Source: Prasinococcaceae sp. CCMP 1430 (lineage: Eukaryota > Plantae > Prasinodermophyta). Taken from it: 64,000 bases of DNA. Position numbers and translations under genes: made by a program. The stretch's first letter is position 1. Each line of letters starts with the position of its first letter. Location: NCBI GenBank assembly GCA_013416795.1, contig RQSC01000004.1, positions 509,554 through 573,553 of the forward strand, in the 5' to 3' direction. Below the pieces are notes generated by a model, which did no database searches, had not been told where the DNA came from, and worked only from the letters and a program-made list of their open reading frames with translations. Shown here in pieces: positions 1,092 to 49,839 of the stretch.

Positions 1092-1225
1092 CTGTGTAGG
1101 GGGCGTAATAAGTCACCAAATGAATGCCGCGAGTCGGGCTGCTGGCATGAATTCCAGAATGGCAGGGCAGGGCGCTGGCGCAAACGCACGGCACACGCAT
1201 GCATGCGCGCGAGTTGCGCACACCG

Positions 1226-2921
1226 TCATCGGGCCGAGCACATTGGCCTGTGACCGCGCTCCCAGCCTACGTACTGGTAGCCCGCGCGAGCGCTCCACCA
1301 CAGCTGCGACGCCGTTGGGCAGCAGCGCTCACCCCTGCGCTCGTGGCGTGCGCGTGGGGGCATGGCTTGGCGTTAGCGGCGCGCCCGCATCTCTGCGCAC
1401 ACTTTTGGACCACGCGCTACAGCGGTCGGCGAGGGTATCGCACAGTCATCTTCGGCCGCGCTCCCTTGCGCGAACGCACGCGCGAACGTGGGCGCACACG
1501 CACCGCTCTCCCTCTCCGCCAATCCCCAGCCTTTGGAAGAAATCCTCCCCGAGCAGCGGGTGACGCCAGAACGTCGCAGTGCGCCGCGATCGCCCGCCAA
1601 TCACGCGTGTCTCTCGCGCTCGCGTCGCCAGCAGGTAGCTAGCGTAGCTGTGTTGCGCGGCGAGGGCGCACGCGCTCAGCGGGTCAGCGCGTTGTACGTG
1701 AGCGCTTGTGGTCAAGCGTGCATGCGCGCACAGCCGCAGTTGGCTTCGGGCACACGCGCACACGCCTCGCCGGTGCACGTACGTCTGATACTCGGAGAAC
1801 CCAAGCCGCGGGTCTGTCGACGCGAGCGCTGCGTCTAGGATTCGCCACGCCCACGGAGAGTCAGAGCTCGCGGCCGGCACGTCGGCACCACGGAGCAGAT
1901 CGAGCTCCTCCCCCTCCCTGCCACCGCCGCCGCCTATTACTCCCAAGAGCTCCTGCGCGAACGGCGCCGAAGCAGGGCGCGCCCCCGCATCGCACGTCCA
2001 GGCAGCAGCGCGTCAGCGTGCTGGCACGGCGAGTCAGAGCGCAGCGGTATGCCAACACGCACGTACCTGCACGACATCTCTCCTAAACAGCATCGCGTTG
2101 GAGACATAGCTCGAGCCGTCCGGCGCATATGCGCTCGGCACGCGCGCGAGGCCTGCTACGGCCGCGTCATATGCGCGCACGGCGTTACCGCCGGCGTGCA
2201 GCAGCGTCACTTGCGCCCCCACGCTGCCGGGTGCATGCGAAAACGACTCAAACGACGGTGTCCGCAGCGCAATCATGTCCATGTCCCAGACGACGAATCT
2301 CGAGCTAAGGTCTTGCAGCTGTGGGTGGGGCGAGACCGCCGCGCCCAGCTTGAGCAGCTGCTGCATGTACCAACCACCGAGCGTGCGGCCCGAGTACACT
2401 GAAGCTGCGCCGTCGTCGCCACGACGCTTGTCGAAGTACGCGTCAAGCGCCGCGCGCGTGACACCCGGTAGGACGCTATCCTCAGATACGCAGCGCACAC
2501 GTAAGTGGGCCGCGTGCTCCGCTGCGAGGTCCGCGCATGCGGCCGCATCGGCAGCCAGCAGCACTACCGAGCGAGGACGCACGAACTTGGCCACGGAAAA
2601 CAGCACGGCGCGGGTCACGCAGGAGGGCGCGGCGAGCGTGCCGACGACGTCGGTGTCCGCATAGGGGCTATCGTGAGCGCCTGAGAAGACAGACGCGCCT
2701 TTGTCACTGCCGCTCCCGTTGCCTTGACCGCCCGCCCGTGGCAGTGCCCTCTCGCACCTGGCGTCCCGTTGCGCTGCGGTCGCGCATCGCGGCGGCGAAG
2801 CAGTGCGCCATGCGGCAAGCGCGAGCAGCGCGAGCGCCGCGAGCGGCGCTGCTGCTGCTGCCCGCCCTTGAAGACGTCGCACCAGCCGGGGGGTACGTCG
2901 CTCCGCGCCGGCGCGTGCCAT
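1226..2921 (-). CDS. DUF6492-like putative glycosyltransferase, type II membrane protein, 4 exons (approx. 2921-2067, 1952-1783, 1647-~1504, ~1336-1226)
   Basis: Splicing at GTACGT/GTGCGT...CAG gives GWYMQQLLKLGAA...FVVWDMDMI (DxD)...FRRDVVQ|ELL...FSEYQT|YASY...GYQYVGWERGH. N-terminal signal anchor AAPLAALALLALAAW. Confidence 0.7.
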
Positions 2922-3540
2922 CGCCCCGCGCCAGCGGCGGGGCGCGCCGTGTGGCGGCGGTTCGGTTGCCGTCACACGCGCCACCACTGGGGGCGCGCCC
3001 GGGGAACTGCCTCAAAAAAGGGGGTACAGGAGTGGGGGGCGAGGGCCAGCGGTGGCGAAGCTCGCGCGCCGCACCGCGTGCGGCAAGCAGCCGCGGCGGC
3101 CGCGGCTTCAAGACACGCGAGAGCACACGCAACGCACGCGCTCGCGTGGTAGCGCACGCAGCGCACGCCTGGCGCGACGTCACACGTGCATGCCCACAGC
3201 TCCTGACGCGCCAGCGCCTCGAATAGCCATACAACATTCACAAGGGATCCACAGAGCGACTGCGCGAGCCTCGCACGTGATGCACGCGCGCGCTAGGCGC
3301 ACAGGCGGCGACGCAACGCCCGTCGCGAGGGCTCCTGCCTGAAGCCACGCCGAGCAGAGGGCGTCCCAGTCGTTTCCATTCTTGCTCTAGAGTGCGTTTC
3401 CTGGCTGCTTCCTCTTTCTTCCAACACACCTCCGATGCAGCAGCAGTGCGGCCCGCCTCGCCACGCCGCGCGCGGGTAGTCGGCCACCCGCCGGTCAACC
3501 CCGCCGCGGGCATCGATCTGAGGTAGCACCTGCGTCGTAA

Positions 3541-5662
3541 TTAGGGAAATCCCGAGAACGCGCCGCGCCTGGTCTGTGGGGTCCCGGGCCTCTGCGCCAC
3601 TCCTCTGCCCTTGTCCGCCGGTTTGAGGATCTGGAAGCTGCACATGAGCGTCTCGTCGACTGACATCATCGCGCCCGCGTTGTCGAACTCGCCGCAGTAG
3701 TTTGGCGCCGAGAACACAGTCACCAGCTGTCGCTCAGCGAAGAACTCGTAGCCGTGCTCGACCACCTGGTGCGCCCGCACAACTAGGTCGAAGTTGAAAT
3801 GGTTGAGGAATTCCGTCACGACCTGCTTGCCAAAGACGTAGCTCACTCCTCTGTCGTTCTCGCCCCACCCCAGAATGTCTGGGTCTGGGTCAGCCCATAG
3901 GAAGTCGCACAACATGCCGTTGTCCGGGATGTCGGTAGGCCGCGGGATGTTTTGAATCTGCTCGAGGTTCTTCAGTTCGGGGCTCAGGCCGCCGTGGATG
4001 CAGAAGATGCGCTCGTCCACAACCGCAGCGAACGGCAGGCAGTTGAAGACGTCCATGAACATCTTCCAGGTCTTGATGTTGAACCTGCGCTTCACCTCGT
4101 CATAGAAGCCATAGATGCGGCTGATGGAGGCGCTTTCGTGGTTGCCGCGCAGCATGTGGAAGCAGTCGGGGTACTTGATCTTGTAACACAACAACAGCAT
4201 AGTCACCTCGACACCGTTGCGACCGCGGTCCACATAGTCGCCCAGGAAGAGGTACGAGGTGTTCGGCGGGTAGCCACCGTACTCAAATAGACGGAGCAGG
4301 TCGCTGAACTGGCCATGGATGTCTCCGCAGATTTTCACCGGCGCACTCAGCTCGAGCATACATGGCTGCTCGAGGAAGATCGCCCTACGGGTGTGCGCGC
4401 GATGGCGATGAGCGGGCGACCGAGCGACCGAGCGAGCGCGGGGTTGTCAGCAGTGCGATGACTTGCACAGCGTGCGGCGCCGCAATGCGCCGCGCTGCTG
4501 GTCTACTGCGCCTCCATGGTGCGCATCGCAGCGCGAGCTGAAGAGTCCGCAGATAGGAGGGGCGAAGGCCGCGCGACCTCTCTCCCGGCCGCAGGCCGAC
4601 GCGCTGCCGCCGCCCGCGATAACGCCCCCATGCGCCGAGACTGCCGCAACGTTCCCCTCCTTGCCACGGCACGCCGCACATGCCCGCGCAGGTGCCAGCG
4701 CCGCCCGCCCTAAGCGCACTCCTTCTCAAAAAAACGCTCGCAGGAGGGGCGCGGGGAAAAAAGTTGGTCGCGCGCTCACGGGAGCGCGCGCGAGACGCGC
4801 ACCAGCGCCCCTCCGCGCGCGCGCGTGGGGGGGCGCGCGCGCCTGCCCGCGCGCCCATGCTGACGGGCACACGCGTCTCTTTCGGTCGGAGATGGGCGCA
4901 GGGGGAGGGGCACGGGGGGCATGGGACACGGGCGCGCGCCAAAAGGATGCCGCGAGCTCGCGCGCGCACGGCGTGCCAATTTTTTTTCTCGCGGGCGATT
5001 TTTCCGAGCGAGTTTTTTCGCAGATGAACGCCCCGCGCCACCCCGCGCCGCGCCCCACCCCCCATCAGCGCCGCGCGTGGTCCTGGCTCACCCCACCCTC
5101 CGCCGCCGGCGCGTCCGATCGAGCGCGCGAGGTGCGCGGCGCGACGTACTTTGCCTTGGCGCACACGGTGCGGACCTCATCCTCGCTCAGCGGCACCGAC
5201 CGCTGTTGAAGCGCGTGCGCGCATTGGCGGGCGAGCCGCGGGCAGGGCGCGGGTCAGCGTCGCACCAACGCGTGCAAGCAGGGGGGAGATGAGGGGGTAA
5301 GGGGAGGCTCGAAAGGGGTGGGGTTGAGGAGCGGCATCTCGTTTACGCAACGCCCCGCGTGCGCATGCGCGGACGAGCGTGGTGCGAGTGGCCTTGGGGT
5401 GGGGGGTGGGGGGGGGTGCGCCGCGCCTGCGCTTGACCACCCCAAAGACGAGCACAGGAATTCGCCGGTGCGCGAGAAACGCCCTGCGACTGGGCGCGGC
5501 GCGCGCGGGGTGCGTGTCGGCGCGCGCGCGCGCGTCGCCCCGGCGTACCTGCGTCCTGTTGCCCCCAGCGCCAATGAGGCGGTTGATTAGGTCGTCGATG
5601 AGGTCGTCCCCCTTTGACGCCGTCGCGGCGCGGTCGGCCGCGCTCGCGCCCGACAGCGACAT
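3541..5662 (-). CDS. PP1: Serine/threonine protein phosphatase PP1 catalytic subunit, 3 exons (5662-5549, 5202-5150, 4384-3541)
   Basis: PPP motifs [35 protein letters not shown]. Exons join in frame through canonical GTACGC/GTACGT...AG introns. Confidence 0.97.
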
Positions 5663-5710
5663 AATAATTCTCTGTACCCCCCCCCCCCCCAAGCTGCCGC
5701 GTGCCGCCTT

Positions 5711-11674: not shown

Positions 11675-12419
11675 CACGAGCGCTGCGGCCGCCAGGCGCC
11701 TCCCGCGCCTTCTCCCCCCCCCCCCTTCCCGCGTGCGGGAGCCTCTGAGCGGGCCGCGCCACCCAGGAGCGCGCGCTCCCTCCGCGCAGGCCTCTCGCGC
11801 GCCCTTCGGCGAGCCGCTGCGCCGGCCCAGGCGCGCGCGCTGTGGCGCCTCGCCGCGGCGCCGCGCCGGCCGCCAGCCGCCGCGCCCGGCGGCTCCAAAG
11901 TCGCGGAATACTCGAACGGGAAATCGACGTCTCTCGAAAACGAAAAAAACGGCGCCACGGATATGAAATGATGCAGCAAGCGTGGCCAAGCAAGAAATAC
12001 GTGAACCCTTTAAAATACCCCAAATAGTAACCCTAACTCTGGGGCACCGCACTCTCCTTCGGGTGTCGTTCGGCAACGCCCCTGCACAACGTGTGGGTGT
12101 TTGGGGCAGAAACTCAACCCAAACCTCATTGGGTGGGAGAGCGCGCGGTATTTGATTTCAAAGTGAGAGAGGAGCTGCGTTTGTTGGAGACCCTGATTTG
12201 TCCGGGCCGCACACGCGCGGGCGGGTAGCAGCAGTAACGACTGCGCGCGCTCGCGCGCTTCTGCCGCTCGATGTGCCACGCCGGGCGCCACATCGCTCGC
12301 CGCTCACCGCACGTCGCGCGGCGAGTGACTGAGAGCCGCGGGGCAGAGACCGCCCGGAGCCGAAGGACGAAGAGCCGCGCGCACGCGCGCGCGCCGGGGC
12401 GCTGCAGGGCGCGGCGGCG

Positions 12420-14166
12420 ATGGAGCGGCGCGGGAGCTCTGGCTCGGGCCGCTTTGGCGCGTCCCCATCGATGCGGCGGGAGGGTCCCGCGCTGTGGGAG
12501 GCAGCCGCGCGGCACATCTTCTCGCCGACGGCGGCGCCACTGCCGCCCGAGGTGTCGCGCGCTGAGTACATGCGATTCGAGAGCGCCGACTTCCACGGCA
12601 TCGGCCGCTCCAAGACGGTGCCCATGCGCAACGCGCACAAGCCCGTGTTCCTGTACAGCGGCGCGGCGGCCATGGGCCCGCGCAGCGCGCTCTCGACGCC
12701 GCCCGAGGTGAAGGCGCTCGGATGCCCGAACACGCAGATCATCCCCGACTGGAGCACCGCGCGGCTCGTCGAGCACGCGCCGGGGCGCCCCACGGCGCGC
12801 GTGCTGTGCGATCAGACGTGGACGGACGGGCGGCCCATGCCGAGCTGCCCGCGGCACGTCCTGCGCACCGCGCTCGAGTCGCTGGCAGCCACGGCGCCCG
12901 AAGGCGCGGAGAGCGAGGGTGCCAAGCTGCTTGCGGCGTGCGAGTACGAGTTCACGCTATGCGACGTGGCGCCCGCCAACGGCGACGATGACGGCGGCGG
13001 CCTGACGTTGACCCCCGCCTTCGGCGGCGTGGACATATTCAACACGATGCAGACTGCAAAGACGGCCGAGTTTCAACAGGAGCTCGACCGCTCGCTGCTC
13101 ACCATGGGTGTTGATCTGCAGACACTCAACGCGGAGTACGGCGTGGGACAGCTCGAGATCACCTACTCGCCCCACTTCGGCCTGGACGCTGGCGATGCCG
13201 CCTTCACCTTCAAGGGCGCGGTCAAGGAGATCGCGCAGAGCCACGGGCGCCGTGCGACGTTCATGACGCGGCCCTTCGCGGACGCCGATGGCGCCTCGAA
13301 CGGTGGCCATACGAACATGTCCGTGTGGTGCGGCGAGACCAACCTGTTGCAGGACGACGACGCGCCGGACGGCCTGAGCGAGTACGGGCGACACTTCCTG
13401 GCGGGCATGCTCGAACACGCGCGCGCGCTGCAGGCGCTGGCGGCGCCAACGGTCAACTGCTACCACCGCGTGCAGCTCGACTCTTGGGCTCCGGTGGTGG
13501 CCTCGTGGGGCTTTGACAACCGCACGTGCATGGTGCGCGTAAAGACGCCAAAGACATGCCCCGGCTGCGCATCGGCCTACTTCGAGTGGCGACAGCCGGG
13601 CTCGGCCGCCAATCCGTACATCGTGCTGGCCGGCGCTGTCGCCGCGGGCGTCGACGGCGTCCAGCGCAAGCTCGGGCCGAATCTCCCGCCGCCGGCCAGT
13701 GGCTACCACTACGACGCCGTGCGGGGCGATGCTGCGGCCAAGACGGAGCACGAGTGGATCCCCACGTCGCTGCGCGGGGCGCTCGACGCGTTCAAGCAGG
13801 TAAGCGCCGCGCGAGCCCGAGCGCGCGCACGTCGCTCCCGCGAGCACCCCGGTGCAGCCCGCTACCGCGGAGGCGCAGGCGTGCGCAAAGGCACACACGT
13901 ACACGCACATAGTGGCGCGAGCGCACGTGCAGGCACTGACGCCCGCGCGATTTGCCGCATGTGCCTAGGACGAGGTCCTGCAGCGCGCAATGGGCTCGGC
14001 CTTCTGCTCATGGTTCTGCCTGGTCAAGGAGGACGAGCTCGCTTCCTTCCCTGAGAAATTCATGCAGCAAGATCGGGACAAGGCGCAAGAGGTGCTCGTG
14101 GATAGTAGTTGCGGGGCGGACGAGCTCGCACAGCACTGCCGCAGACTCTATAGCGAGTACATATGA
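12420..14166 (+). CDS. Glutamine synthetase class I-like (lengsin-like / gamma-glutamyl ligase), 2 exons (12420-13799, 13969-14166)
   Basis: RFESADFHGIGRSK, CEYEF, NAEYGVGQLEI, NGGHTNMS, WGFDNRT, FEWRQPGSAANPY. Intron GTAAGC...CACTGAC...CTAG; last exon ends RLYSEYI*. Confidence 0.9.
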
Positions 14167-14317
14167 TGCTGCCGCGCGCAGAGCGTGCGCGTCCCCGCGA
14201 GCGAGGCATTCGCCACGAGCTCCACGACCAACATATTACTTGCGTTTCATTAGTCCGCGGCGCGCCGCGCGCGCGCGGCGAGCGCGGCCATCCACCGCGC
14301 CCCTGTTTCCTCGCGCC

Positions 14318-17263
14318 TCAAGGCGCGCCGCTCGTGTCGGCGATCGCCGCGAGAAAGGTGTCCTTGTGCTGCGTCGGGACGAATTGCTCAAAGCCCGCCA
14401 GCAGCTGGGGAGTGCTGCGCAGCAACGCCACCACGCCCTGCAGCGTGCGCGCGGCCACGCCCGACGTCTCGCCCGCCCTGCCGCCGGCACCGGCACCGAT
14501 AGCTGCATCGCCACCAGAGCTGGCGCGATAGGCCTTCAGCAGACGCTTGAATTGCGCGTAGCCGTCCTTGGGCAGCGCGTCCTTGACACGAGCAATGTAC
14601 GCCACGCCGTCAGATGGCGCGCTCTGTGCCGCGACTTCTCCGGGGCCAGACCGCGCGGGCGCATCCGCCTCAGCTGCAGCTGCGCGCGCCGCCGCGAGCA
14701 GCCCACCCCCTCGTCGCGCCAGTTTGCTGGCGGGGGCACCGGCCGCGACTTGTGACGCCTGTCTGCGCGTGGCATCGCCGGACCCCTTCGCCAGCGCGCC
14801 GGCCAGCTTGTCGTACTCGGCCTGTAGGTTGAGCGCGTTCCCCGCCCTGGGCCCCAGTGGCCGTGCGGCACCTGCATCCCTGTCGCTGTACAGATCGGCG
14901 AGCGAGCCGCCGCCTATCCTCCGCTCGGGCGGCGCGGCGTACTCCCCCTGCTCCTGCCGGGCCTGCTGCTGTCGCATGAACGACGCCATGCCACTGAGAC
15001 CAGCGCCATTGCTCAGGCCGAGCGCCACAGGCGGTGGAGCGCGCGGGCGCGCCGCGACGGTCGCGCCGCTGAGCTGATGGGTCACACGTGCTGACTCGGC
15101 AGGCGCGGCCATGGCGGCCTTGCCCCGCGCTGCCCCGCGCGCCATCGCTTTGAAGAACTTGACCATTGCGCCTTGCGCCTCGCCAAAGGTGCCGAAGGTG
15201 TGCATGTGTGGGCGCAGCCATGCACTCATGTTGGCCTGCACCGCTGGCGAGCCGAAGCGCTCGTCCGCCAGGAGGATGGCGCCGTAGTCGTTTCGGTGGC
15301 GGATGACTCGGCCCACGGCCTGGTTGACGGCACGCATGGCCTGGTCGGAATACCACACGGCACCCGTCAGCCCTCCGCCTTTCCTGCCCGGCGCACTGCT
15401 TCCTCCGATCTCGCCCTTGCTCTTCTTGTCCAGGAAGTCCCGCTTGAGCTGAACCTTAGGGTCGACCTTCGGCGCGTAAGGTATGCCAGTGACCACGACA
15501 CAGCGTCCTGCACGGTCGGCGAAGTCGAGGCCCTCCGACACCTTGCCCCGGCACACAGCGAACATGACGGCACCGCCGCCCCCCGAGTCGAGGGCGGCGT
15601 TGAACTCCGCGAAGACCGCTCCCAGCTCCGACGTCTTTCTGGGCTCGACGAGAGCGTGCTTCTTGCTCGCGATGCGATCCCACTGCCCCCTCTCGCGCCA
15701 GTACTCCACGCAGCTTGCCAGCACGCCGTAGCTGGGAAAGAAAACCAGCATGCCGTCGGGTACCACGCGTGCAAGATTCACCAGGGCGTTGCCGAGCTCC
15801 TCCTTGTAGCTGGGCGTGTCGCGGCTCCTGAAAGAGGAGTTGAGGGGTACGCGCGAGGGGCCCGTAGGCAGCACGCCCACCATCACGTTGGCGGCGTCGA
15901 CCACGTGCGGGTTCTCCAAGCGGACCGGGAAGGGCAGGGCCAGCTCCTGTGCCGTCGACTCCATTGGTGCGAGCGTGCCCGAGGCGAGCACCACGCGGCT
16001 GAGGCCCAGCTCGAGTAGCGGCGCCAGCCCTGCCCCTGGGTTGAAGCACCAGTAGCTCACCACACGCTGCACCGTCACAGCGTCCCGCAGGCTGCCCCCG
16101 TCGCTGCCGCCCGCGCGTGGCATTTCATCGCGCACGTACAGCACGTAGTCGTGCGAGTCGCGCCGAGAGCGCTCGAGCGTGCGAATCGCGCGCGCGACGA
16201 TATCCATGCTGGGCGTTCCGCTGCCCACCGCCGACACGCCACCCAGGTTTGCGGCCTCGGCGGCCGCATCGGCGGCGCCCTCCATGCGCTCTATGAGCAT
16301 GGGCATATTGTCGCTGTCGATGCCAACGTCCACCAGCAAGCGATGCAGGTACACGCCGCGCTCGACGAGGCCCTTGGGGGAGGGTACAGTCAAGGCGGAC
16401 AGCGCGCGCTCAATCGCTTTCAGGACGACCACAAGCTGCTTCGCGTCCTCCGCCCCCGATCTGGCCATCGCGGCCTCCTCGGATGCGTCCGGTACGCCCA
16501 GCTGCTCGCCGTCGGCGGCTTGCTCCGCCGCCTGCGCGATGCGCTCTGCCTCCACGACGGCCGCGGCGAGTGTGGGCACCGGCAAGTCGAAGCTCGCCAC
16601 TTCCGCGCACACGCTCTCGATGTTATGTGCCTCGTCGAATATGACCACCGACGAGTGCCAGTCGATGCCCTTGAGCGCGCGCCTGTTGAGCGGGTCGAGC
16701 AGGTAATGGTATGGCAACAGTACCAGCTCGGCATCCTCGAGGCCCTCGCGGTTGACGAAGTACGGGCACGGCCCTTCCCTCTTGCCAAGCTCGACGAGTT
16801 CTTCGATGTCCATGGGCGGCATCTCGGGCGCCGTGCCCTCTGACTGTTGCGTGACCAGGTTGACGGCTGCACGGTGGTGGCGACACGCGCGCTGGTTCAC
16901 CATCGCCCTGCACGCGTTGTTGAGAGCGGCGCCGCGGAGTCGCCCCACGCTGCTGTGTATGCACGTGTGCTCGCGGCTCGACAGCACCACCGTGCGCGGT
17001 CTGTACCCCGTCTTGCGCAGCTCGCGCACGACCTGCGCGAGCTGCGAGTGCGTGCGGCTCGCGTACAGCACCTTGGTGCCGACCGGCCCACGCCCCTGCG
17101 CCGGCGCGGCGTCCGCCGGGGGGCGCACGTACACGTTTGCGCCCGCCTCCGCCTGCATCCGCTCGTGCGCGGCACGTGCCTGCGCGCGCGCGCGCTCGCG
17201 ACGGTGGCGCTGCCACGCGAGCGACGCGCACAGCAGGCAGAGCGTCTTGCCGGTGCCCGTCGG
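14318..17263 (-). CDS. RTEL1: RTEL1-like XPD-family Fe-S DNA helicase; native N-terminus absent
   Basis: PTGTGKTLCLLCASLAW, YASRTHSQL, Fe-S cysteines (HTC...NAC...RAC...PCPY), IFDEAHN, SGTLAP, VCRGKVSEGLDF, NQAVGRVIRHRNDYG, and a C-terminal harmonin-N-like domain. Confidence 0.95.
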   Translation of the reverse strand, partial: PTGTGKTLCLLCASLAWQRHRRERARAQARAAHERMQAEAGANVYVRPPADAAPAQGRGPVGTKVLYASRTHSQLAQVVRELRKTGYRPRTVVLSSREHTCIHSSVGRLRGAALNNACRAMVNQRACRHHRAAVNLVTQQSEGTAPEMPPMDIEELVELGKREGPCPYFVNREGLEDAELVLLPYHYLLDPLNRRALKGIDWHSSVVIFDEAHNIESVCAEVASFDLPVPTLAAAVVEAERIAQAAEQAADGEQLGVPDASEEAAMARSGAEDAKQLVVVLKAIERALSALTVPSPKGLVERGVYLHRLLVDVGIDSDNMPMLIERMEGAADAAAEAANLGGVSAVGSGTPSMDIVARAIRTLERSRRDSHDYVLYVRDEMPRAGGSDGGSLRDAVTVQRVVSYWCFNPGAGLAPLLELGLSRVVLASGTLAPMESTAQELALPFPVRLENPHVVDAANVMVGVLPTGPSRVPLNSSFRSRDTPSYKEELGNALVNLARVVPDGMLVFFPSYGVLASCVEYWRERGQWDRIASKKHALVEPRKTSELGAVFAEFNAALDSGGGGAVMFAVCRGKVSEGLDFADRAGRCVVVTGIPYAPKVDPKVQLKRDFLDKKSKGEIGGSSAPGRKGGGLTGAVWYSDQAMRAVNQAVGRVIRHRNDYGAILLADERFGSPAVQANMSAWLRPHMHTFGTFGEAQGAMVKFFKAMARGAARGKAAMAAPAESARVTHQLSGATVAARPRAPPPVALGLSNGAGLSGMASFMRQQQARQEQGEYAAPPERRIGGGSLADLYSDRDAGAARPLGPRAGNALNLQAEYDKLAGALAKGSGDATRRQASQVAAGAPASKLARRGGGLLAAARAAAAEADAPARSGPGEVAAQSAPSDGVAYIARVKDALPKDGYAQFKRLLKAYRASSGGDAAIGAGAGGRAGETSGVAARTLQGVVALLRSTPQLLAGFEQFVPTQHKDTFLAAIADTSGAP

Positions 17264-17650
17264 GCCGTTGATCAGCACGGTGATGTCGGATGCGGCGACG
17301 CGCTCGGCCAGCGCGAGCAGTGCCAGGCTCTCGGGATCGGCGGCGACGGGCTCGTGCGGGCCGCGCAGCAGCGCGGTCGCGAAGCCGGCACCGACCGCGG
17401 CGTCGTCCGAGGTATAGGAAAGGCGGGCGGGGTTGCCGTCGCCGAACGCGATCGCCTGGCGGCCTTCGTCGCCGAGGATCAGCGTGCGCGCGGCGGCCGG
17501 GGGCACTTCGCCTTCCGCCACCAGGAACAGGTCATGCGCGCTCGCGCGGCCGTCCTCGCCCGCGCCGATCGCAAAGCCCTGGGCCCGCAGCGACGAGACG
17601 AGCGCATATTTCTGGCGAAGCACGGCGGCCGACGGAAGGATGGATCGCAT
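17246..17650 (-). other. Bacterial sigma54-dependent (NtrC family; FlrC/FleR/FleQ-like) activator N-terminal fragment, fused in frame to RTEL1
   Basis: EPVAADPESLALLALAERVAASDITVLINGPTGTGK matches the start of the sigma54-activator AAA+ domain (family knowledge, recalled, not searched). Purine-rich GGGGG lies upstream of ATG 17650. Confidence 0.8.
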
Positions 17651-18285
17651 TGTTACCCCCTGAGACACATCCCCTTTTGAGACTAATCTGGTTAACGACG
17701 CGTAAAATTGCCCATTTCGAGACCGCTTTGGTCCGGGCGCGTCTACGCGTGCGCACGTAGAGCCGAAATTTTTCGCTTAAGCTGCGCGCGCGCCGCGTGG
17801 CGCTCGCCCTCCCGCTCTCCCCCTCCCCCTCCCTCGCGCGCACTCGCATTCGCGCCTGCCGCCGCCACCGGAACGCCGGCGCGCGCGCGAATTCGTACGG
17901 CGGTCGGCGGCAGAGGGTGCGATATTTGGGGTTTATGTTTAGGGTTGTGAAAGTGCCCCTTTTACTGCAACGCGACCCGCGCGCGAATTGGGCGCGGGTT
18001 GGAAACTCGAATTGCGTTTGCTTTTCGAAACTGCGTTACCGGTACGCGTTTTTTTTTCTGTTGCGCACGGGCTGTTGTGGGTTCGGCGGGGCGGTGATGG
18101 ACGCAGCGCGGCGGGGCGCGACGCGCGGCGACGCGGGGGGGACCACAGAGCGCGCGCGGGAGGGGGGGGGGCGCGCCGGCGGCCGGGCGCCGGGTGCCGA
18201 CCGCCCTCCTTCCGCGCGAAGCCGCGCGGAGCCCGCGGAGCCCACGCGCAAGCTCGGTCCGAAACGCGGCTTGACCGTTTCGAGC

Positions 18286-21200
18286 ATGGCGTCCGGCGAG
18301 GAGATGAGCATCGGCTTCGACGGGATGAAGAAGCTGCGCAACCTGGGCCGCCGCTTGCGGAGCAAGCTGGACAGCGGCGCCGAAGGCGCCGAAGGCGGTG
18401 GCGGAGGGGGTGGAGGAGGTGGAGGAGGCGGAGGTGCGCGGGGTCACCCGCGCGGGCGGCCGTATACGGGCGGGGCGGGCGGCGGGACGAGCGGAGCGGC
18501 GCAGCGCAGCGCGGCGGCCATCGCGGCTGCCGCGTCCGCCGACGCAGCCGCCAGGGAGGACGAGCTCAAGCGCCTTCGAGCGCGTGTGGAGCAGCTCGCG
18601 ACGGCCAACGAGGCGCTCGAGCGATACGCCGCCGACACGCGCGCGGCAGCCACGGCGATGGCCGCCGACGCGGCAGCGGGTGCGCCAGGCGCTGGCGCGG
18701 GGCGCGGGGTGGGCAGCGACGAGTCCCTGCGGCGCGCGAAGCAAGCGCTCAAAGACCAGGAGGCCGAGCTGTGGCGCCAGGGCGAGGAGCTCGAGGAGCG
18801 TGAGGAGGCGCTCGACGCGCGCGAGCGCGAGCTTGCTGCGCGCGAGCGCGAGGTGAGGCAGGCGAAGGCGCAGGGCGCGCCTCCAGGCGCGGGCGGCGCG
18901 AACGGGGCCGGCGCCGGCGGCGGTGCCTCCGAGGACGTTCTCCAGAAGAAGATGGTGAAGCTCAAAGCCTTCGAAGCCGAACTTCGATCGCGGCAGGAGA
19001 AACAGCGCGCGGCGGACGCGGAGCTGAAGCGGCGCGCGGCCGCCGCCGCGGAGAGCGCGGCTGCGGAGGCGCGGCGCATTGAGTCCACGCGCGACCAGCT
19101 CGACGCGCGCGAGGCCGACCTCAGCGCGCGCGAGGAGGCCGCTGGCGTGGCGCATCGCGAGATCGGGGAGAGGAGCGCGGCTCTCGACGCGCGCGCGCGC
19201 ACGCTGGACGAGCGGCAGTCAGAGCTCGAGGTGGAGAGAACGACCATGACCGAAAGCACTCGCGGCCTGCGCAGTGACCTGCAGCAGCTGGATGAGCGCC
19301 TCGCCAGCGGGGCCGCCGAGGCGGAGCGCGCCGCTGACGCGGCTCGCGAGCGTGTTGAGGCGCTCGAGGCGCAACTCGCTCGCGCGCAAGCGGAAATCGA
19401 TGCACTTCGTGCAGAGCGCGCGTTGCGGGAGGCAGCGTCCGCTCGTGCCGCGGCACTCCCGACGCCCGAGGCGCAGTCCGAGGAAATGAACGAGCCGCAG
19501 GGCGACTGGGGCGACGGTGACGACGGCCTCGATGTGGCGCTGCTCGATGCCGAGGCCGCAGGCGCACCCGACGTCGTCGGCGGAGGATCCCACGAGGACC
19601 ACGCGCAAACGGCGCTGCAGCGCAAGGTCGACGAAGCGGAGGGCGAAGCCGCAGCGCTGCGCGCCCGCGTCGACGAGCTCGAGGCACAACTCGAGACTAT
19701 GCCCCTCGAGGGCTCGCAGCAGCAGGTCCAGGCCGAGGAGGAGCATATCGCACGCGTAGCCAAGCTGGAGGCGGAGCTGTCGAGCGCCGTCGCCGAGTCG
19801 AATGCGCGCGCGGAGCGCGTAGCGGCGCTCGAGAGGGAGCTCGCCGAGGCATCCGGTGCGTCGGACGCACGCGCGTCTGATCTCGAGGCAAAGCTAGCCG
19901 AGGCACTCCATGCGAACGGCGAACGTATCAGCGAGCTCGAGGGCGCGCTCGCGGGGGCGTCGGAGGGCAGCGCGGAGCGGAGCGAGCGCGTCACTGAGCT
20001 CGAAACAGCCCTTGAGTCGTCTCGCGCAGAGGCATCCCTGGAGCTCGCAGATCGCTCGCGCCAAATTGAGGAGCTCGAGGCAAAGCTTGCGGAGGCGTCC
20101 GAAGAGCTGGGGTCCACCGAGCAGTCCAAGCGCTCGCAGCACGCTCGCGTGGCTGAGCTTGAGACGCAGCTGGCGCAACTCCAGGCTTCAACAACAGAGG
20201 CTGGCGCCGAGAGCGTCGCGCGCGTCAGCGCGCTCGAGGCGCGGCTGCAGGCCGCGCTCGGCGAGACAGCAGAGCAAAGCGAGCGGGTCGGCGCACTGGA
20301 GACAGATCTTCGCCGCGCGATGGAGCGCGCAGACGAGCTCGAGGGGGAGGCGGCGGCCGCGAGCGAGCGAGCGCGCGAGGCGGAGCGTGCAGTCGCTGCG
20401 GCTCAGGAGCGCGCCGAGTCGGCCGAGAAGTCGACGTCCCAGGCAGAAGCGGCGCTCGCGAGCTCCGAGGCGGCGCTGACGAGCGCGCGCGCGGACATGG
20501 CGCGTGCCGCAGAGGCGGCGACGAGCTCTGTCAGTGCCGCTGACGAGCGCGCGCTGGAAGCAATCGCCAAGCGGCGGGACGCCGAGAGTGCCGCGGAAGG
20601 GGTGGCCGAGGCGCACGCCGAGGAGCTCCAGGCGCTGCGCGACGAGCTCGGCGCGGCTCGGGCGCAGGCTGCCGAGTCGGAGCGCACCCTACGGGCGGCG
20701 GCTGACGGCGAGCGCGCCGCCACGATCGAGGCGGCGGCGCGCGCCGACCGCGCGGAGGAGGCGCTGCGCGCCACTGAGGCGTCCCTGGCCGCGGAGCGCG
20801 AATCTGGCGCGCAGCGCGAGGAGAGCATTGCACGCGCCCTCGATGAGTCCGATCGCTTGCAGCGGGAGCTCGAGGGCGCCACGGCGCGCGCCGAGGCGCT
20901 CGAGGGCGAGCTTGCTGGGGAGCGGGCGCGCGCTGCCGAGCGGGGCGCGGAGCTTGAGGCAGCGCACGCCGCTGCCACCGAAGAAATAGCGACGCTCGAG
21001 GAGGCCTCGCTCAAGCGTCTGGCGGCGCAAAAGAACAAATTCCACCGCGAGAGGGACACGGCCGCGCAGGCCGCCGCCGCCGCCGCCGAGGAGGCGCGCG
21101 CCGCGCAGGCGACTGCCGACGAGGCGCGCCGCGCGGCGGAGACCGATTCCGCCATGCCATCGACGCGGCTGACAATGCCGCGCGCTTCGTAGATGGGCAG

Positions 21201-21806
21201 AATGGGCGCGGTCTTGCCGCGATATTCGGCCATGCGGGTGCGCACCGTCTCTTCGTTATCGTCGGGGCGCCGTTTGGGCAGAAACTCTTTTCCGCAATTA
21301 TCGCAGATCATCGGAAACTCACCTGTGAGCGTCTCCGGTGGACCAGCAATAACGACGGTCTCAATTTTAGGGCGCTTATGTTTGTCGTGATAGCCCTCCC
21401 CGCAATGAGGGCAGCTAAAGCGGCCGGTGATGCGGTCGACCAGCGCGTCCTCATCCACCTCCAGTTCGATGACATGGTCGAGCGTGCGGCCGCGCGCGCC
21501 GAGGCGGCAACGACGGTCGACGACGCAGGGGCGGAGGCGGCGAAGGCGCGCGCGGAGTGCACGCTCGCGCGCGAGGAGCTCGGGCGTGCGCTCGCCGAGG
21601 CAGAGAGCGCGCGCGCTGAGCGCGACGCAGCCGAGGCGCGCCTGCAGGACAAGGCGCGCGAGGCGGGCATCCTGGAGGACCTGCTGCACTCGGTGCGCAA
21701 GGAAGGCGCCATGAGGGAGGCCGCCGAGGCCGCCGCGATCCCCTCCCTGCCCTCTGCCCTCGCGAGCTATCTGCCCTCGGGATTTTTCTCCCCGTCGTCG
21801 TCTTAG
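18286..21806 (+). CDS. Long coiled-coil protein (golgin/myosin-tail-like), interrupted at ~21148-21500; alternative start at 18097
   Basis: About 950 codons of heptad-rich E/A/R/L sequence. The same style resumes in another frame (AAARAEAATTVDD...LEDLLHSVRKE) after the foreign insert. Confidence 0.75.
21148..21500 (-). other. adk: Bacterial adenylate kinase internal fragment (LID zinc domain and flanks), antisense inside the coiled-coil gene
   Basis: RTLDHVIELEVDEDALVDRITGRFSCPHCGEGYH...CDNC...RRPDDNEETVRTRMAEYRGKTAPILPIYEARGIVSRVDGMA. Visibly more AT-rich than the flanks. Confidence 0.9.
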
Positions 21807-22158
21807 TGCGCGCACGTGGGTGGGCCGGTGCGGGAAAGGCCAGCGTGCTTGCGCGTGTGCGAGGCTGCGCCCTCGCCTGCGATGCGCCCTTGGCGGCGCC
21901 GGGTGGTGGGGAAATCTGACGCGACAATAAATACGTGGGAGAAGTTATGAAATACATACTACGGGCCCACGCAGCGTGGGCGGCTTGGGTCTTCTCGTGC
22001 GGCAGTGCAGCTTGGCGTGGGGTGCAGTAGATGCATGCGGTAGGCTATGACGGCATGCGCCCCCCTCGCTCTTCGTCGATTATCCCTCTTCGTTGTCGGG
22101 TTCTCGCGCGGACAAAGAAAGGTTTGGGCTCGCGCGTGTGCGAGGCGGTGCTTTTCCG

Positions 22159-24858
22159 TCACATCGGGCAGTGGCCAATCCATTCCTCCTCTGCGGTGCG
22201 CCCTGCGCAGTCCATGCAGCAGCAGTCCTTCGCGATGAGGCAGTGCTCGTCACAGTAGCACGTGACGCCTTTGTACTTCTGGCAGTGCGTGCACCCGGAT
22301 GGACACCACTCCTCGGGGATGGGCAAGGAATCCTCGTGGTTTGGGCAGTGCATCGCCGTGGGCTCGGATGCAGCCGCACTGTCGCGCGGGCTCGTCGGAG
22401 CGTCGGTAGGCACGAAGCGCCCGCCGGGCGCGTCGGTCGGAATCACGGGCGACTCGCTCGGCACGACGCGACCGCCGGGCGCGTCCGTCGGCGTGATCGG
22501 CGACTTGGTGGGCGGGACGACTGGTGCCTCGGTCTGGGGGTCAGTCGGGCGCCCTCCGGGCGCGTCTGTCGGAATCACGGGCGACTCGCTCGGCACGACG
22601 CGACCGCCGGGCGCGTCCGTCGGCGTGATCGGCGACTTGGTGGGCGGGACGACTGGTGCCTCGGTCTGGGGGTCAGTCGGGCGCCCTCCGGGCGCGTCTG
22701 TCGGAATCACGGGCGACTCGCTTGGCACGACGCGCCCGCCGGGCGCGTCCGTAGGCGTGATGGGCGACTTGGTTGGCGGCACGACTGGTGCTTCAGTTTG
22801 GCGGTCAGTCGGGCGCCCTCCGGGCGCGTCTGTTGGAGTAACGGGCGACTCGCTTGGCACGACGCGCCCGCCCGGCGCGTCCGTTGGTGCGGTGACGGGG
22901 GCGTCGCTCCGAGCAAGCGCAGTCGGCATGTGCGTGGGTGTGTCGATCGGAACGGGCGCCGTCGGAGCGGGCGTCGGTTTGACGAAGTCGTTTGCACCGA
23001 AAGACGTAGTTGGCCTGGGCGTGGTTGGCGCGGGCGTGGGCGCTGAGGTGATCTGGTCTTCCACGTCTGGCACTGCCTCGGGGCCCAGCGCGGGGATGCC
23101 GACGGATCCGAAATTGAGCAGATCCTCATCGATGGCGTCCAGGAAGATGTTCACCCCGTCCTCATCGCCCCCGGGCCCCGGCGCGGGCGCGGGCACGGCG
23201 GCGGCCTCCGATGGCGACTTCAGCTGTGCGTCGATGGACTCCACTGCGTGCACCGAGGCTGGAGTCGGCTCTCCCAATGCAGGGGCCGGCAGCGGCGACG
23301 GGCCTGGCGCCGGAGCGGGCAGCGGCGACGGGCCTGGCGCCGGAGCGGGCAGCGGCGACGGGCCTGGCGACGGTTGGCGACGGCGCGGGCAGCGGCGACG
23401 GGCCTGGCGCCGGCGCTGGCGCAGGCGCGGGCCCGGGCTGCGGCAGCGGCTCTCGCTCGGGCGCAGGTTGCGGGAGCGACGCGCTCGCGTCGCCCGTTCC
23501 GATCAGCGCTTCATCGATGGCGGACACCGCCTCACTTTGGTCGTCGTCGTCCGAGGCGTCGCACGTAACCGCGCACGCAGTCATTGCCGCCGCTGGCGTC
23601 GGCTGCACCGACGAATACTCGCCCGCGTCGCACTGTGGTTCCGCATCGAGGACGGGCACGAGCGACAGCATGAGCGGCTGCGTGCTCGTGCCGTACTCAA
23701 GGAAGGCGCCCGTGTCCGTTGCGATCTCCTCGCCTGCACTGTTGTCGGCCATGAACTGAAGCGCGAGCGTGTAGTTCGCGCCGTCCGAAAGCGTGACATA
23801 CGGCGCGGGCGCGAGCGCCTCGCCGATGGTGAGGCCATCCGCGCACGCGGCTGGCAGTCCCGGCATTTGCTTGTCGCCGAGCGGATTGCCGTAAGGGCAT
23901 CCGCGCGAGAAGCGGTTGGGGTCGTTCTCGGTCTCGTGGTGGGAGAGCGGGAAGATGTACGAGTAGCGCTGCGCGGGTTGGCCGTCCGCGTCGCCGGGCT
24001 GCGTGATCTCGAGCGTGACGTTGAGGGCCATGGCCACCAGCGTAGGCAGAGCCTCCGTGGGCCAGTTGGCCATGCTGATCGCGCCCATCGGCACTCGCCG
24101 CGTCTCGCGCGCGCAGTCGGCGCGCGAGCTGTGCGAGCGCGCCGAGGGGGCGCGAACGCCCGGCAGCGCCGTCTGCGCAGAGGCGTCCGCCACCACGCGA
24201 TACGTGTTGCGCATGGAGCTACCGGCGACGGGCTGCCCCCAGGTGAGCGACGTGGCCTCCTCAGCGTTGGGCTCGTACAGAGGCGGGCTGCTGGCAGCCA
24301 TCGACAGGGGCAGCTGCACGGCCCCTAAGATGTGCGCGGAGAGCACGCGCACCTCGCCCAGGCAGCACGCGCCAAAGAGGCTGTTGTAGCCTATGAGGTC
24401 GACGGAGCCGGTACCGCCCACCAGGTCCTCGTCGATGGAGCTGGCGGCCGCAATGTCGTTGTTGGCCGGCAACACTGTTTGTGGGTTAGTGAGGGGGGGG
24501 GGATGGGGTCATGCGCGATGGGATGCACGCGTCGCGGAAGCCTGGAGTCAGCGCGCGCGGAGCGTCCTTTCAGTCTGGCCAGGCAAAGCGCGCGACGCGA
24601 TGCCCGCGACAGAGTGCAGGGATTTTCGCCAGGGGTGAATGCACAACGAGTGGTGCGAAGACACGCAAGGAGCGCGCGACGAGTAAGTAGGTGCGCACCG
24701 TGCTCCTCGGCGACGACGACGAGGCCTCCGAAAGGCACCTGCGGGGCCGCACTTTCGGCCATCGCGCGCGGCGCTGCCAGCAGGATCGCGCACGACCCGC
24801 CGGCGGCCGCCAGTGCGAACCGCGCGAACGAGGGGGTGCCATTGCCGCGCGGCGCCAT
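22159..24858 (-). CDS. Secreted/cell-surface mucin-like protein with Pro/Thr repeats and a C-terminal somatomedin-B-like Cys domain; exon 1 24858-24699, exon 2 from 24474; apparent frameshift ~23372
   Basis: Signal-like MAPRG...FALAAAGGSCAILLAAPRAMA. Intron GTGCGC...ACTAAC...ACAG joins in phase. C-terminal TCYCDEHCLIAKDCCCMDC. Confidence 0.75.
22410..22890. repeat. Coding tandem repeat, 132-bp (44-aa) unit, ~3.5 copies, with internal PTDAPGGR sub-repeats
   Basis: aatcacgggcgactcgct recurs at 22441, 22573 and 22705. Confidence 0.95.
23285..23420. repeat. 30-bp tandem repeat (PAPAPGPSPL on minus strand)
   Basis: ggcagcggcgacgggcctggcg at 23288, 23318 and 23348, plus a degenerate copy. Confidence 0.9.
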
Positions 24859-25092
24859 TGCCGCCGCCTCTCGCCCGTGTCCCTCCTGATGCTTCGACGC
24901 CCTCCTCCTCCGTGCGCGAGCGGAGGCGCCGCCGCCGTGCTCGTTCAATCGCTGCCGCCAACCGACGCAGTGTGTGGCGGCGCGCGCTGCCGCGCGCTGT
25001 CTGCCCGTCGCGCGCGGTGTGGCAGGGCGCGCGCCGCTCGGCACCCGGTGGCGGCGCGCAGCCCCATCCCCCTTTCCCACCCCGTCCCGTGC

Positions 25093-25265
25093 NNNNNNNN
25101 NNNNNNNNNNNNNNNNNNNNNNNNNNNNNNNNNNNNNNNNNNNNNNNNNNNNNNNNNNNNNNNNNNNNNNNNNNNNNNNNNNNNNNNNNNNNNNNNNNNN
25201 NNNNNNNNNNNNNNNNNNNNNNNNNNNNNNNNNNNNNNNNNNNNNNNNNNNNNNNNNNNNNNNNN
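25093..25265. other. Assembly gap (N run)
   Basis: Run of N. Confidence 1.
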
Positions 25266-26134
25266 GCCGGGCTGCCGCCGCGACTGCGGCCCGCTCCGCG
25301 CGGCGGGGGGAGGCGCCAACCCGTCCCCCGAGGCGCCCGGGGCCGCGCACACGCACGCGAATTTTGCGAATCGCGTCTGATTGTCTCCCGTGGTCAGATA
25401 TGACATCATTTCATAATAGGTTACGATGTGGTTGGCGGCGGTGGCGCCGGCGCGTCGTCGAAGGACTGAATCGGCGATTCGGGGCGAATCGGCGCGATCG
25501 AAGCACGGTCGTCCTCACACCACACAACCTCACCGACAATTTCTGATCCCGCTCCTCGGAGGAGTGTCCGGGCGCGCGGGGTTTGGAATGAGTGGCGTCG
25601 CAAAGAGGCGGACTCTTTTCCTGCGATGCGCTCGGATCGGACGCCCCCACGCCTCGAGAGCGCCTCGATCGAGCCGCTCGATCACAGCGCAGGCATCGAT
25701 GAATGCGTGCACACACGAGATCTGATAGTGCTGGTTGTGGAGTACTGTAATGTAATTGGACGCGACTGGTCCTGTGATTGGACACGTGTACGAACGTCGA
25801 GGCTTCCAGGTGGCACGCACGTGGATGCGCCTGCGGTCACTTCACCAATGCCTGGAACCCATTCTGGTGCCTACCATGGATATATACATATCACTCTAGA
25901 ACTACAGTACTTTTGAGTCCCTTATCACTTTGTGGGATGGGTAGTGCGGCGTCATCCCGTGGCCGGTGGGACCGCCGCTGGCCACTCGACGCAGGCACTC
26001 GTTTGGGAGGCCACGTGCCTGACTCGCGCCCTGCGGGGGTGGCGCGACTCTGCGTGCGACGAGCACCTGCCCACCGCCTGGCCGCCGCGGGGCGAGGCAC
26101 GGCGCCAGGCGAAGGGAGGGGGTGGCAGTGGGAG

Positions 26135-27545
26135 ATGGCATCCGCGGCGCAGACGCGCGGCGCGCCCCTCATGGCTGCGCTCGGCGCGCGGCGCCATGGA
26201 GGAGCCTCCCGCCGCGCATGGCGTGCCATGGCGAGGGCGGCGAAGACGCCGCACGCGGCCGTTCGGCGCGGGCCCGGCGGGGCTGGCCGCGGCGCTCGCG
26301 CTGCGGCGCGCGGGCCTCAGCGTGGCTGTGTACGAACGTGCCTCGCGTCTCGACAGGAGCGCCGGCACGGGCGTCGCGATCTGGCCCAACGGCACGAGGG
26401 CACTCACCCTGCTCGATGCACGCGCATCCGCGCAGCTCGAGCGCGACGGATGCGAGCTCACCGGCGTGCTCGCGCCAGGTATGGAGACTGTGCCTTTCCC
26501 GGTGCGCGCGATGCATGGTGGCGCCCCTGCTGTGATGGTGCAGTGGTCAGCGCTGCAGCGTCTGCTGTTGGAGCGCTGCAGTTGCGGCTCCGATGGAGGC
26601 GATGTTCGATCCCGGCCAGTGTCTGTGACGCTGGGCGCGGAGGTGGCAAGTATCGAAGCGCTCCCTGACGACAGCGTGGCCTTGCTAGGCGCGTCGGGTG
26701 ACTCGCTCGGCACCGCCGACATCGTCGTGGGCGCCGATGGGATCCGCTCGCGCGTGCGCGCGGCGGCGGGCTGTCATGCGGAGGTGCTTGACGGCGGGAG
26801 GAGGCTGGTGCGCTCTGTGGTACCGCGCGCGAAGCTCAGCGGCGCCGCTGCCAAGTTTCCGCGCGGGACCAGCGCCTTGTGGGGAGGCAAGGAGAGCGGC
26901 GCCACCTTATGTCTCATGGACGTCGGGCAAGACTGCTTTTACTGGGCCGCGGGCTTGCTCGATGGCTCAGACGTGTCAGCGGCGGCGAATGACGTGCGTG
27001 CCCTCGCTGAGAGCGTCGCATCTGAGGCGGAGGCATCTGGTGAGGGACTTGGGCCCATCATGGGTGAGATTGTGCGTGATGCTGTGGCCGCGACGCAGCA
27101 CGTTTACGACAACCGCAGCCTTAGCATCCCGCCTCAATTCGACTCGCCTTGGGAAGCGTCGGCCGGCGGCGCGATCACGCTCTGCGGCGATGCCATGCAC
27201 GCTGTGGTGCCCAGCGTCGGCCATGGCGCCTGTCTGGCCCTGGAGGACGCCGTGGTCCTCGGTCGCCATGTGGCTGTCGCCGTTAGGAACGGCGGCTCAG
27301 CGGCGGATTTAAGGGCGGCACTGCGTGCGTACGAATCGGCGCGTCTGCCGCGCACCGCACAGGCTCAGATACACAGCTGGAAGCAGGGCGAGAAGTCGTA
27401 TGGCCGTGCGGGAGACGAATTTGATTCGATGGCACGTGACCTAAGCGAGTATGGCCCGGGCCTTGAGGGTGTACAAAACTGGCTGCTGCAGTGGGACGGC
27501 CAGGGTGATGGCGAGCTCAGCAATGCTGCGTTTGGCGACGAGTGA
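26135..27545 (+). CDS. FAD-dependent monooxygenase (zeaxanthin epoxidase/salicylate hydroxylase-like) with probable transit peptide; apparent frameshift at ~26264
   Basis: GAGPAGLAAALALRRAG...VYER, VVGADGIRSRVR, TLCGDAMHAVVPSVGHGACLALEDA. The upstream frame gives MASAAQTR...KTPHAAV, which is out of frame by one base with GAGPAG. Confidence 0.88.
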
Positions 27546-49761: not shown

Positions 49762-49839
49762 NNNNNNNNNNNNNNNNNNNNNNNNNNNNNNNNNNNNNNN
49801 NNNNNNNNNNNNNNNNNNNNNNNNNNNNNNNNNNNNNNN

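Follow-up and report, generated by a model that had tools for sequence, protein, structure and literature searches.

Does a piece of a bacterial adenylate kinase gene (adk), lying within a coiled-coil gene of the green picoalga Prasinoderma coloniale, belong to the genome of that alga? The question is raised by a 64,000-nucleotide stretch (the window) of an assembly of strain CCMP1413, for which the original prediction proposed that bacterial DNA had been captured by the alga. The features on which the argument turns are collected in Table 1.

Table 1. Coordinates of the two foreign patches and of the native sequence around them, in window positions
Feature	Position	Strand	Remarks
Native RTEL1-type helicase body, PTGTGKT onward	14318..17265	-	Pfam DEAD_2, ARCH_RTEL1, Helicase_C_2
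Sister patch, 518 bp, non-native, bacterial-looking	17266..17783	-	Substitutes for 400 native bp
Native coiled-coil gene, 5' portion	18097..21146	+	ATG 18097, alternative ATG 18286; translation agrees with the wild 1129-aa ORF
adk patch, 339 bp, non-native, internal piece of a Sphingomonadales-like adk	21147..21485	-	Swaps out 13 bp of wild contigs L081, L082, L083
Premature TAG	21190..21192	+	Inside the adk patch; terminates ORF 17797..21192; wild ORF reads through
Middle of the adk fragment, LID region	21270..21403	-	~17 additional residues between the Cys pairs; GC about 0.52-0.54
18-nt overlap GCGGCCGCGCGCGCCGAG	21486..21503	.	Same as native alga and prolongs the adk reading (LGARGR); join point
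Native coiled-coil gene, 3' portion	21486..21806	+	Different frame in the window; stop 21804-21806

Identity of the adk fragment

The minus-strand translation of 21132-21518 is free of stop codons, and within it 21147-21503 corresponds to the C-terminal half of a bacterial adenylate kinase. The fragment matches Pfam ADK (E 1.6e-9) and ADK_lid (E 3e-7) as well as the NCBIfam adenylate kinase model NF001380 (model positions 102-200 of 216, E 1.2e-24), and its closest relatives are Adk proteins of Sphingomonadales (E about 1e-43 to 1e-50); the prediction of an alphaproteobacterial-like adk on the minus strand of an algal ORF was thus borne out. The patch contains the LID domain, with two Cys pairs (CPHC...CDNC) that align with those of the relatives, as does the RRPDD motif (R-x-DD), and extends as far as VDGMAE. 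It carries neither the P-loop half, nor a start codon, nor the end of the gene: the N-terminal P-loop (GxPGxGKGT) and the NMP-binding domain are missing, the match beginning only at model position ~100-102 of 216. The reading frame is open across 119 codons and the fragment shows no decay. It nevertheless scores below the curated whole-protein cut-offs (86.9 bits vs 251 for NF001380, 76.6 vs 168 for TIGR01351), which marks it as a gene fragment, and the Pfam domain cut-off is the only one that it passes (38.5 vs 26.8). Given the missing P-loop/NMP-binding half, the lack of a start and a stop codon of its own and the antisense position in a coding region, the fragment is, as read from its sequence, without function.

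Within the long zinc-finger-LID Adk of Sphingomonadales (PF00406, PF05191; NF001380, TIGR01351), the fragment shares the CxxC...CxxC LID, the RRPDDNEETV stretch and the C-terminal helix. Its outer portions share 82-89% of their nucleotides with the adk genes of two of these relatives (P0003 and P0015), and against P0003, the closest relative aligned, a hand count gave one amino-acid difference in 64 aligned residues of these portions. The fragment differs from these proteins in holding only model positions ~100-200 of 216 and in carrying ~17 LID residues foreign to the best matches. The LID region concerned is 58-59% identical in nucleotides to the relatives, and the additional residues are lacking from all 80 top-ranking loci in each of the two collection scans, where the matches cover 102 codons vs 119 in the fragment. 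A near-identical donor was not found among GTDB species representatives and metagenome contigs, which reach 72-73% amino-acid identity at most. A set of 5.8 billion proteins gave no more than 74% identity; as it covered proteins of 71-225 aa only, a donor Adk of ~235 aa with the 17-residue LID insert would escape it.

The adk patch is absent from wild populations

Over about 19 kb, the window aligns collinearly, at 97-99% identity, with Tara Oceans contigs of wild P. coloniale, and this alignment set the exact patch limits. The contigs L081/L082 and L083 are collinear with 11859-25092 at 97-98.7% identity, and the sole departures are 17266-17783 and 21147-21485; neither patch is present in any of them. 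Six further Tara contigs, collinear over 1-5710, are likewise patch-free. The 339 bp of the adk patch stand in the place of 13 bp of the wild contigs, located at 991-1003 in L082. On the left, 17784-21146 is 98% identical in nucleotides to L081, L082 and L083; on the right, identity with the wild contigs begins at 21486 and continues at 97%, with a C-terminal peptide the same as that of the wild ORF. In the wild contigs the coiled-coil ORF is unbroken across the site and encodes 1129 aa. As had been predicted, the insert is an addition to the native gene, ends the ORF early and shifts the frame, the coiled-coil reading being picked up in ORF 21378..21806. With the ORF truncated and 13 coding bases deleted, the patch is not compatible with the function of the host gene.

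The right edge was expected to be readable in both genes, and this proved correct: the 18 nt at 21486-21503 match the native alga at every base and carry on the adk reading. The relatives read L-G/A-A-R-G-R here, with P0015 agreeing at 15 of 18 nt. Past 21503, identity to adk drops to about 46-50%, and upstream of this position in the adk reading there is an algal antisense reading without adk similarity. The prediction of no terminal repeats also held, since the boundaries of the adk patch show no terminal inverted repeat or target-site duplication but just GC-rich chance repeats. The GC content of the patch is 0.59, as against about 0.77 in the flanks.

Searches with the coiled-coil protein for a gene model or transcripts across the adk site gave none at E <= 1e-10, and another search gave one spurious match; these blank results reflect the low complexity of the protein. 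Exact look-ups of the junction-spanning window ORFs, the wild coiled-coil proteins and the adjoining Gln-synthetase-like ORF returned no record.

A sister patch is missing from a gene model of the same strain

The second foreign patch that had been announced nearby is indeed present, 3.4 kb away, and is non-native by comparison with the wild contigs. The 400 native bp lost here encode the N-terminus of an RTEL1 helicase and its 5' region. In their place, the patch supplies the start of an ORF, with AGGGGG as a Shine-Dalgarno-like motif, and ~128 codons, followed by the Walker A motif. Its GC is 73%, that of the adk patch 59%. The sister patch matched no family of Pfam or NCBIfam and no plasmid, and the Atlas gave only a weak lead, to the N-termini of sigma-54 activators (score 0.87). 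The single donor suggested for both patches in the original prediction is neither supported nor contradicted by these features.

The helicase body is 99% identical to the Tara protein P0121, and the native RTEL1 N-terminus is carried by P0121, P0243, P0247 and PRCOL_00005520-RA (P0241), the last being the published CCMP1413 gene model and the EukProt entry for P. coloniale. When searched for with tblastn, this N-terminus was absent from the whole window. In the comparison of the window helicase with PRCOL_00005520-RA, 982 of 987 aligned residues are identical and all 5 mismatches fall in patch-encoded residues ahead of PTGTGKT. The gene model thus matches the window after the patch yet has the native N-terminus, which indicates the same strain, assembled differently and without the sister patch. 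For the adk site, the same-strain argument rests on this neighbouring patch. The sister patch is built in a similar way: it too lies at an extreme-GC site and takes the place of native bases, and at its left edge (17246-17265) ~20 nt coding for the P-loop are probably common to both sources and would form the join. At the second junction of each patch no overlap could be demonstrated.

Assembly quality and composition of the patch sites

The window is a gapped, scaffolded sequence: it contains 972 N in seven runs of 1, 1, 1, 78, 148, 173 and 570 bases, and one N gap is adjoined by a 72-nt poly-G run. Both patches lie where reads should fail, as GC over 60 nt reaches a maximum of 0.933 at each site, the 99th percentile of the wild contig being 0.90, and the joins have the look of overlap-driven ones, with 18 nt shared at the adk patch and probably ~20 nt at its sister. 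The published P. coloniale assembly was made from PacBio reads with NextDenovo, Arrow and NextPolish and has 22 chromosomes (PMC7455551).

Other low-GC stretches of the window (3544-4446, 25512-26119, 27243-27542, 41804-42270 and 43966-44457) held no more bacterial fragments. The only match in the scan of these stretches was a native PP1-type phosphatase. In the literature, we found no paper on such patches in P. coloniale assemblies.

Origin of the patches

Taking into consideration that the wild contigs are patch-free, that the sister patch is missing from a gene model of the same strain, that the assembly is gapped and that the sites are of extreme GC, we consider it very probable that the adk fragment lies outside the genome of the alga and results from a chimeric join in this assembly of CCMP1413. 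On the same evidence, the proposal that the alga captured bacterial DNA did not stand; the outcome is essentially the assembly artefact that the original prediction had itself named as speaking against it, and the uninterrupted ORF was seen in wild contigs. False gap closure with contaminant reads accommodates the 93%-GC sites, the joins at shared strings and the N gaps of varying size, and we infer a gap-closure step in the building of this assembly. Short-read coverage would have been lost at the 93%-GC stretch, leaving a contig break; gap closing or contig extension may then have set out from the end of the right-hand contig and, through the terminal 18-mer that the two had in common, passed into reads from a sphingomonad contaminant of low abundance, and after ~340 bases the extension would have been abutted to the left-hand contig without overlap.

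Some observations count against a false join. The published culture was described as axenic (PMC7455551), which leaves the source of bacterial reads unaccounted for, and the failure to find a near-identical donor among either species representatives or metagenome contigs points the same way. In addition, a small target deletion (13 bp), microhomology at one junction (18 nt), with none demonstrable at the other, and the lack of a target-site duplication or terminal inverted repeat are also what a real capture of filler DNA looks like. A double-strand break in the coiled-coil gene of the sequenced culture might have been mended by microhomology-mediated end joining with sphingomonad DNA as filler and the loss of these 13 bp; the young, undecayed state of the adk patch is as expected of a recent event, and absence from wild populations is compatible with a strain-specific one. 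We regard this as very improbable, however, because the similarly built sister patch, which is missing from the gene model published for this strain, would cost a haploid alga the start and the conserved N-terminus of its RTEL1, because both sites are the hardest-to-sequence spots of the locus, which repair has no reason to favour, and because the assembly is gapped. Equally little credence can be given to the broader notion that a haploid green picoalga in culture repeatedly mends extreme-GC breaks with ~0.3-0.5 kb of Sphingomonas-like DNA by way of microhomology, even inside conserved genes; if true, it would be a route of DNA transfer from bacterium to alga that is ongoing and observable.

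The homology-driven junction is also typical of polymerase template switching, and at an extreme-GC site, where genuine reads are scarce, rare chimeras could prevail. A chimera formed at the common 18-mer during library preparation or amplification, by template switching or blunt-end ligation, and then faithfully assembled is still very unlikely: it needs two independent junctions 339 bp apart in one molecule, rejoining the same locus 13 bp on, a double junction much more improbable than a gap fill guided by the scaffold, and the left junction has no demonstrable common bases. Least credible, to the point of being negligible, is the idea that the patch was transferred horizontally long ago, became fixed and today acts as an intron, or as a regulatory antisense element, of the coiled-coil gene. 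The net extra length of 326 bp is 2 mod 3, so that precise excision would bring back the reading frame; however, the patch is missing from all wild haplotypes (97-99% identity) and its GC shows no amelioration. The intron reading was rejected: the GT at 21189, the only one tried, was paired by hand with downstream AGs and gave no frame-restoring GT...AG pair, and splicing could not rebuild the wild protein, since 13 native coding bases are missing.

As biology, the adk patch is very probably ordinary, an assembly fault. Such patches imitate horizontal gene transfer, gene fusions, novel N-termini, premature stops and "bacterial introns", and will yield false positives for anyone mining the assembly of this phylogenetically important alga for horizontal transfer or odd domain architectures. 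They can be filtered as stretches of 0.3-0.5 kb, lower in GC than their flanks or bacterial-looking, that take the place of between a few and a few hundred native bases where GC is extreme, have one junction within a common 18-20-mer and are missing from the Tara contigs of wild populations and from the PRCOL gene models.

Comparison with known systems

At double-strand breaks, filler DNA is captured by NHEJ or MMEJ, for example in the insertion of NUMTs and NUPTs or the capture of foreign DNA. The adk patch resembles such events in its short insertion, small target deletion, junction microhomology and lack of a target-site duplication or terminal inverted repeat; it differs from them in that its sister is missing from a same-strain gene model, that the sites are extreme-GC coverage traps and that conserved genes are destroyed.

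Chimeric joins or false gap closures derived from contaminants in draft eukaryotic assemblies reportedly lie behind disputed claims of horizontal gene transfer, such as that for the first genome of the tardigrade Hypsibius. Like those joins, the patches described here are bacterial sequence within eukaryotic scaffolds, missing from independent sequence of the same organism, placed at sites hard to assemble and free of decay. Unlike joins that bring in whole bacterial contigs or genes, they are scraps of 0.3-0.5 kb within otherwise correct sequence, joined at chance-shared strings of 18-20 nt (GC-rich Ala/Arg coding sequence in one case, probably P-loop coding sequence in the other), and they mimic in-frame fusions and gene interruptions.

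Antisense adenylate kinase fragment in the coiled-coil gene

The original prediction placed a fragment of a bacterial adenylate kinase gene (adk) antisense within an algal ORF, and this was confirmed: the minus strand of 21132-21518 is translated without a stop, and over most of its length it matches adenylate kinase in its C-terminal half (Pfam ADK, E 1.6e-9, and ADK_lid, E 3e-7; NCBIfam NF001380, E 1.2e-24, model positions 102-200 of 216). GC is ~0.77 in the flanks but only 0.59 in this adk patch; over the whole window it is ~70%. Judged from its sequence, the fragment cannot give a working enzyme, having neither the P-loop half nor a start codon nor an end. The coiled-coil gene is indeed broken by a premature stop, with its reading resumed in another frame, and a search of the patch edges found neither a terminal inverted repeat nor a target-site duplication, as predicted.

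Features of the window and wild contigs used for comparison
Feature	Coordinates or source	Strand	Remark
PP1-type phosphatase ORF, 272 aa	3541-4359	-	Tara Oceans loci L166-L171
RTEL1-type helicase gene	14318-17265	-	adjoins sister patch
Coiled-coil ORF, Ala/Glu/Arg-rich	17797..21192	+	terminates at TAG 21190-21192
Coiled-coil reading, second portion	ORF 21378..21806	+	different frame, similar protein type
Pro/Thr-rich tandem-repeat protein gene	22159-23400, ORF 22159..23277	-	BLAST vs Tara contigs
N gaps	25093-25265, 35543, 41695, 44458-45027, 46364-46511, 49762-49839, 53647		three are single N
Wild contig L081	ERZ28654620
Wild contig L082	Logan ERR11733765		probably same sample as L081
Wild contig L083	ERZ28654712

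Comparison with wild Prasinoderma coloniale

A helicase search recovered a wild protein of 1137 aa (P0121) from Tara Oceans metagenome assemblies, and the contigs of this protein and of a sister protein (L081, L082 and L083) carry the entire neighbourhood. They are 97-98.7% identical to window 11859-25092 and collinear with it save at two sites. At one, 518 bp of the window (17266-17783, the sister patch) take the place of 400 unrelated bases in the wild contigs, so that the second non-native insert expected close by is present; at the other, the 339 bp of the adk patch (21147-21485) stand against 13 bases, GCGCGCGGCCGCC. The wild coiled-coil ORF runs straight across the adk patch site for 1129 codons without interruption, and the frame change in the window arises because the net added length, 326 bp, is 2 mod 3. 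Over window 1-5710, six more Tara contigs are 98.9% identical to it and reveal no patch. Exact look-ups for CCMP1413 sequence over the adk site gave no match, and homology searches with the coiled-coil protein, which is of low complexity, yielded none.

All six left-part contigs stop within ~130 nt of window 5710 (5680-5710), and L081 and L083 stop ~70-150 nt beyond 25092, at which an N gap of the window itself starts; both positions would seem to resist assembly whatever the data set. Over the tandem-repeat gene, the BLAST alignments overlap and shift, at 90-97% identity, which suggests that copy number may differ between the strain and wild populations.

Junctions of the two patches

Identity with the wild alga restarts at 21486 while the adk reading carries on to 21503; these 18 bases are therefore common to both sequences and form the join, and the right edge is readable in both genes, as had been proposed. 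Here adk relatives read L-G/A-A-R-G-R, and the closest DNA, from the sphingomonad relative P0015, matches at 15 of the 18 bases, a level equal to that of the adjoining bacterial part; past 21503, adk similarity drops to ~46-50%. At the left edge (21146/21147) the relatives have different codons, and no common bases could be demonstrated. The sister patch probably has a one-sided join as well, with ~20 nt of P-loop coding sequence that the algal helicase would share with a bacterial ATPase gene. No part of the locus is richer in GC than the two patch sites: 60-nt GC reaches 0.933 at both, the 99th percentile of the wild contig being 0.90.

The helicase in the published CCMP1413 gene model

We compared the window helicase with the published gene model from P. 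coloniale CCMP1413 (EukProt EP00793 Prasinoderma coloniale, PRCOL_00005520-RA). The two agree at 982 of 987 aligned residues and are identical from PTGTGKT on, the 5 mismatches all lying before this motif in patch-encoded residues; the Tara Oceans versions differ at ~12 residues. The string coding for PTGTGKT is exactly the point of fusion. The sister patch itself has a bacterial-looking gene start, with AGGGGG seven bases 5' of an ATG followed by ~128 codons, of which the final element is the Walker A motif; it has no recognisable family, and a weak lead points to a sigma-54 activator.

The 400 native bp that it replaces code for the conserved RTEL1 N-terminus, with which the helicase starts in PRCOL_00005520-RA and in each of the three full-length haplotypes from Tara that were aligned (P0121, P0243 and P0247), and tblastn over the 64-kb window found this N-terminus nowhere. 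Its presence in the published model and absence from the window mean that this assembly lost sequence present in the same strain's published assembly. It is far more likely that the build is wrong than that two sub-cultures differ by a deletion plus an insertion beheading RTEL1 in a haploid cell. A glycine-rich stretch just 5' of the RTEL1 PTGTGKT is absent from the published model, presumably as an intron, and is read through in the metagenome ORF calls of L081, L082 and L083.

State of the assembly

Seven gaps (1, 1, 1, 78, 148, 173 and 570 bases) account for 972 N in the window, and their flanks are of extreme GC or homopolymeric. The low GC at 25, 44 and 46 kb in coarse composition profiles reflects N runs, not AT-rich DNA. 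At 49762-49911, the 78-N gap is directly followed by a 72-nt poly-G run, which could be a two-colour-chemistry read artefact drawn in at the gap edge or a real homopolymer. In the P. coloniale genome paper (PMC7455551), 22 chromosomes were built from an axenic culture with PacBio, NextDenovo, Arrow and NextPolish, and scaffolding is not mentioned. The window would thus appear to come from another build of this strain, one that was scaffolded and gap-closed.

Donor of the adenylate kinase fragment

Adk proteins of Sphingomonadales are the best relatives in all three collections. Their overall identity, 70-74%, is a misleading figure because the outer parts of the fragment are near-identical and the middle is divergent. 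The two outer parts show 1 difference in 64 aligned residues (manual count) from P0003, the closest relative aligned, and 82-89% nucleotide identity to relatives. The LID middle (21270-21403, minus strand) has ~17 extra residues between two Cys pairs, markedly lower GC than the other parts of the fragment and only ~58% identity. This insert is in none of the best matches across the three collections; the protein-set search covered proteins up to 225 aa, and a longer true donor may have lain beyond its reach. The middle would be a LID variant that has so far escaped sampling, or else a second-level chimera joining two adk genes. A single sphingomonad contaminant would be a plausible source. GC is 73% in the coding part of the sister patch vs 59% in the adk patch.

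Origin of the patches

On the combined evidence of the wild contigs, the sister patch and the condition of this build, we consider it very probable that the adk patch arose at the assembly level. Short reads would have dropped out at the 93%-GC stretch, breaking the contig; a gap-closing or extension step, which we infer together with the contaminant, would then have tracked the 18-mer into reads of a low-abundance bacterium, and this extension would finally have been joined end to end with the contig on the other side.

The original prediction had the alga itself capture bacterial DNA, and this was not supported: the wild contigs lack both patches, PRCOL_00005520-RA lacks the sister patch, the build is gapped and the sites are of extreme GC. 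Real microhomology-mediated capture at a break, which the anatomy of the adk patch alone would fit, is the main rival; we regard it as unlikely, as it leaves unexplained why the sister patch is missing in the same strain, why the patches coincide with coverage traps and how broken conserved genes were tolerated. A chimera formed at the library stage ranks somewhat below capture, and an old functional transfer is highly improbable. The PP1-type phosphatase product is identical across contigs of many Tara Oceans samples (40 index blocks), which shows near-clonal P. coloniale to be widespread across these metagenomes and makes it a ready wild reference against which this assembly can be checked.
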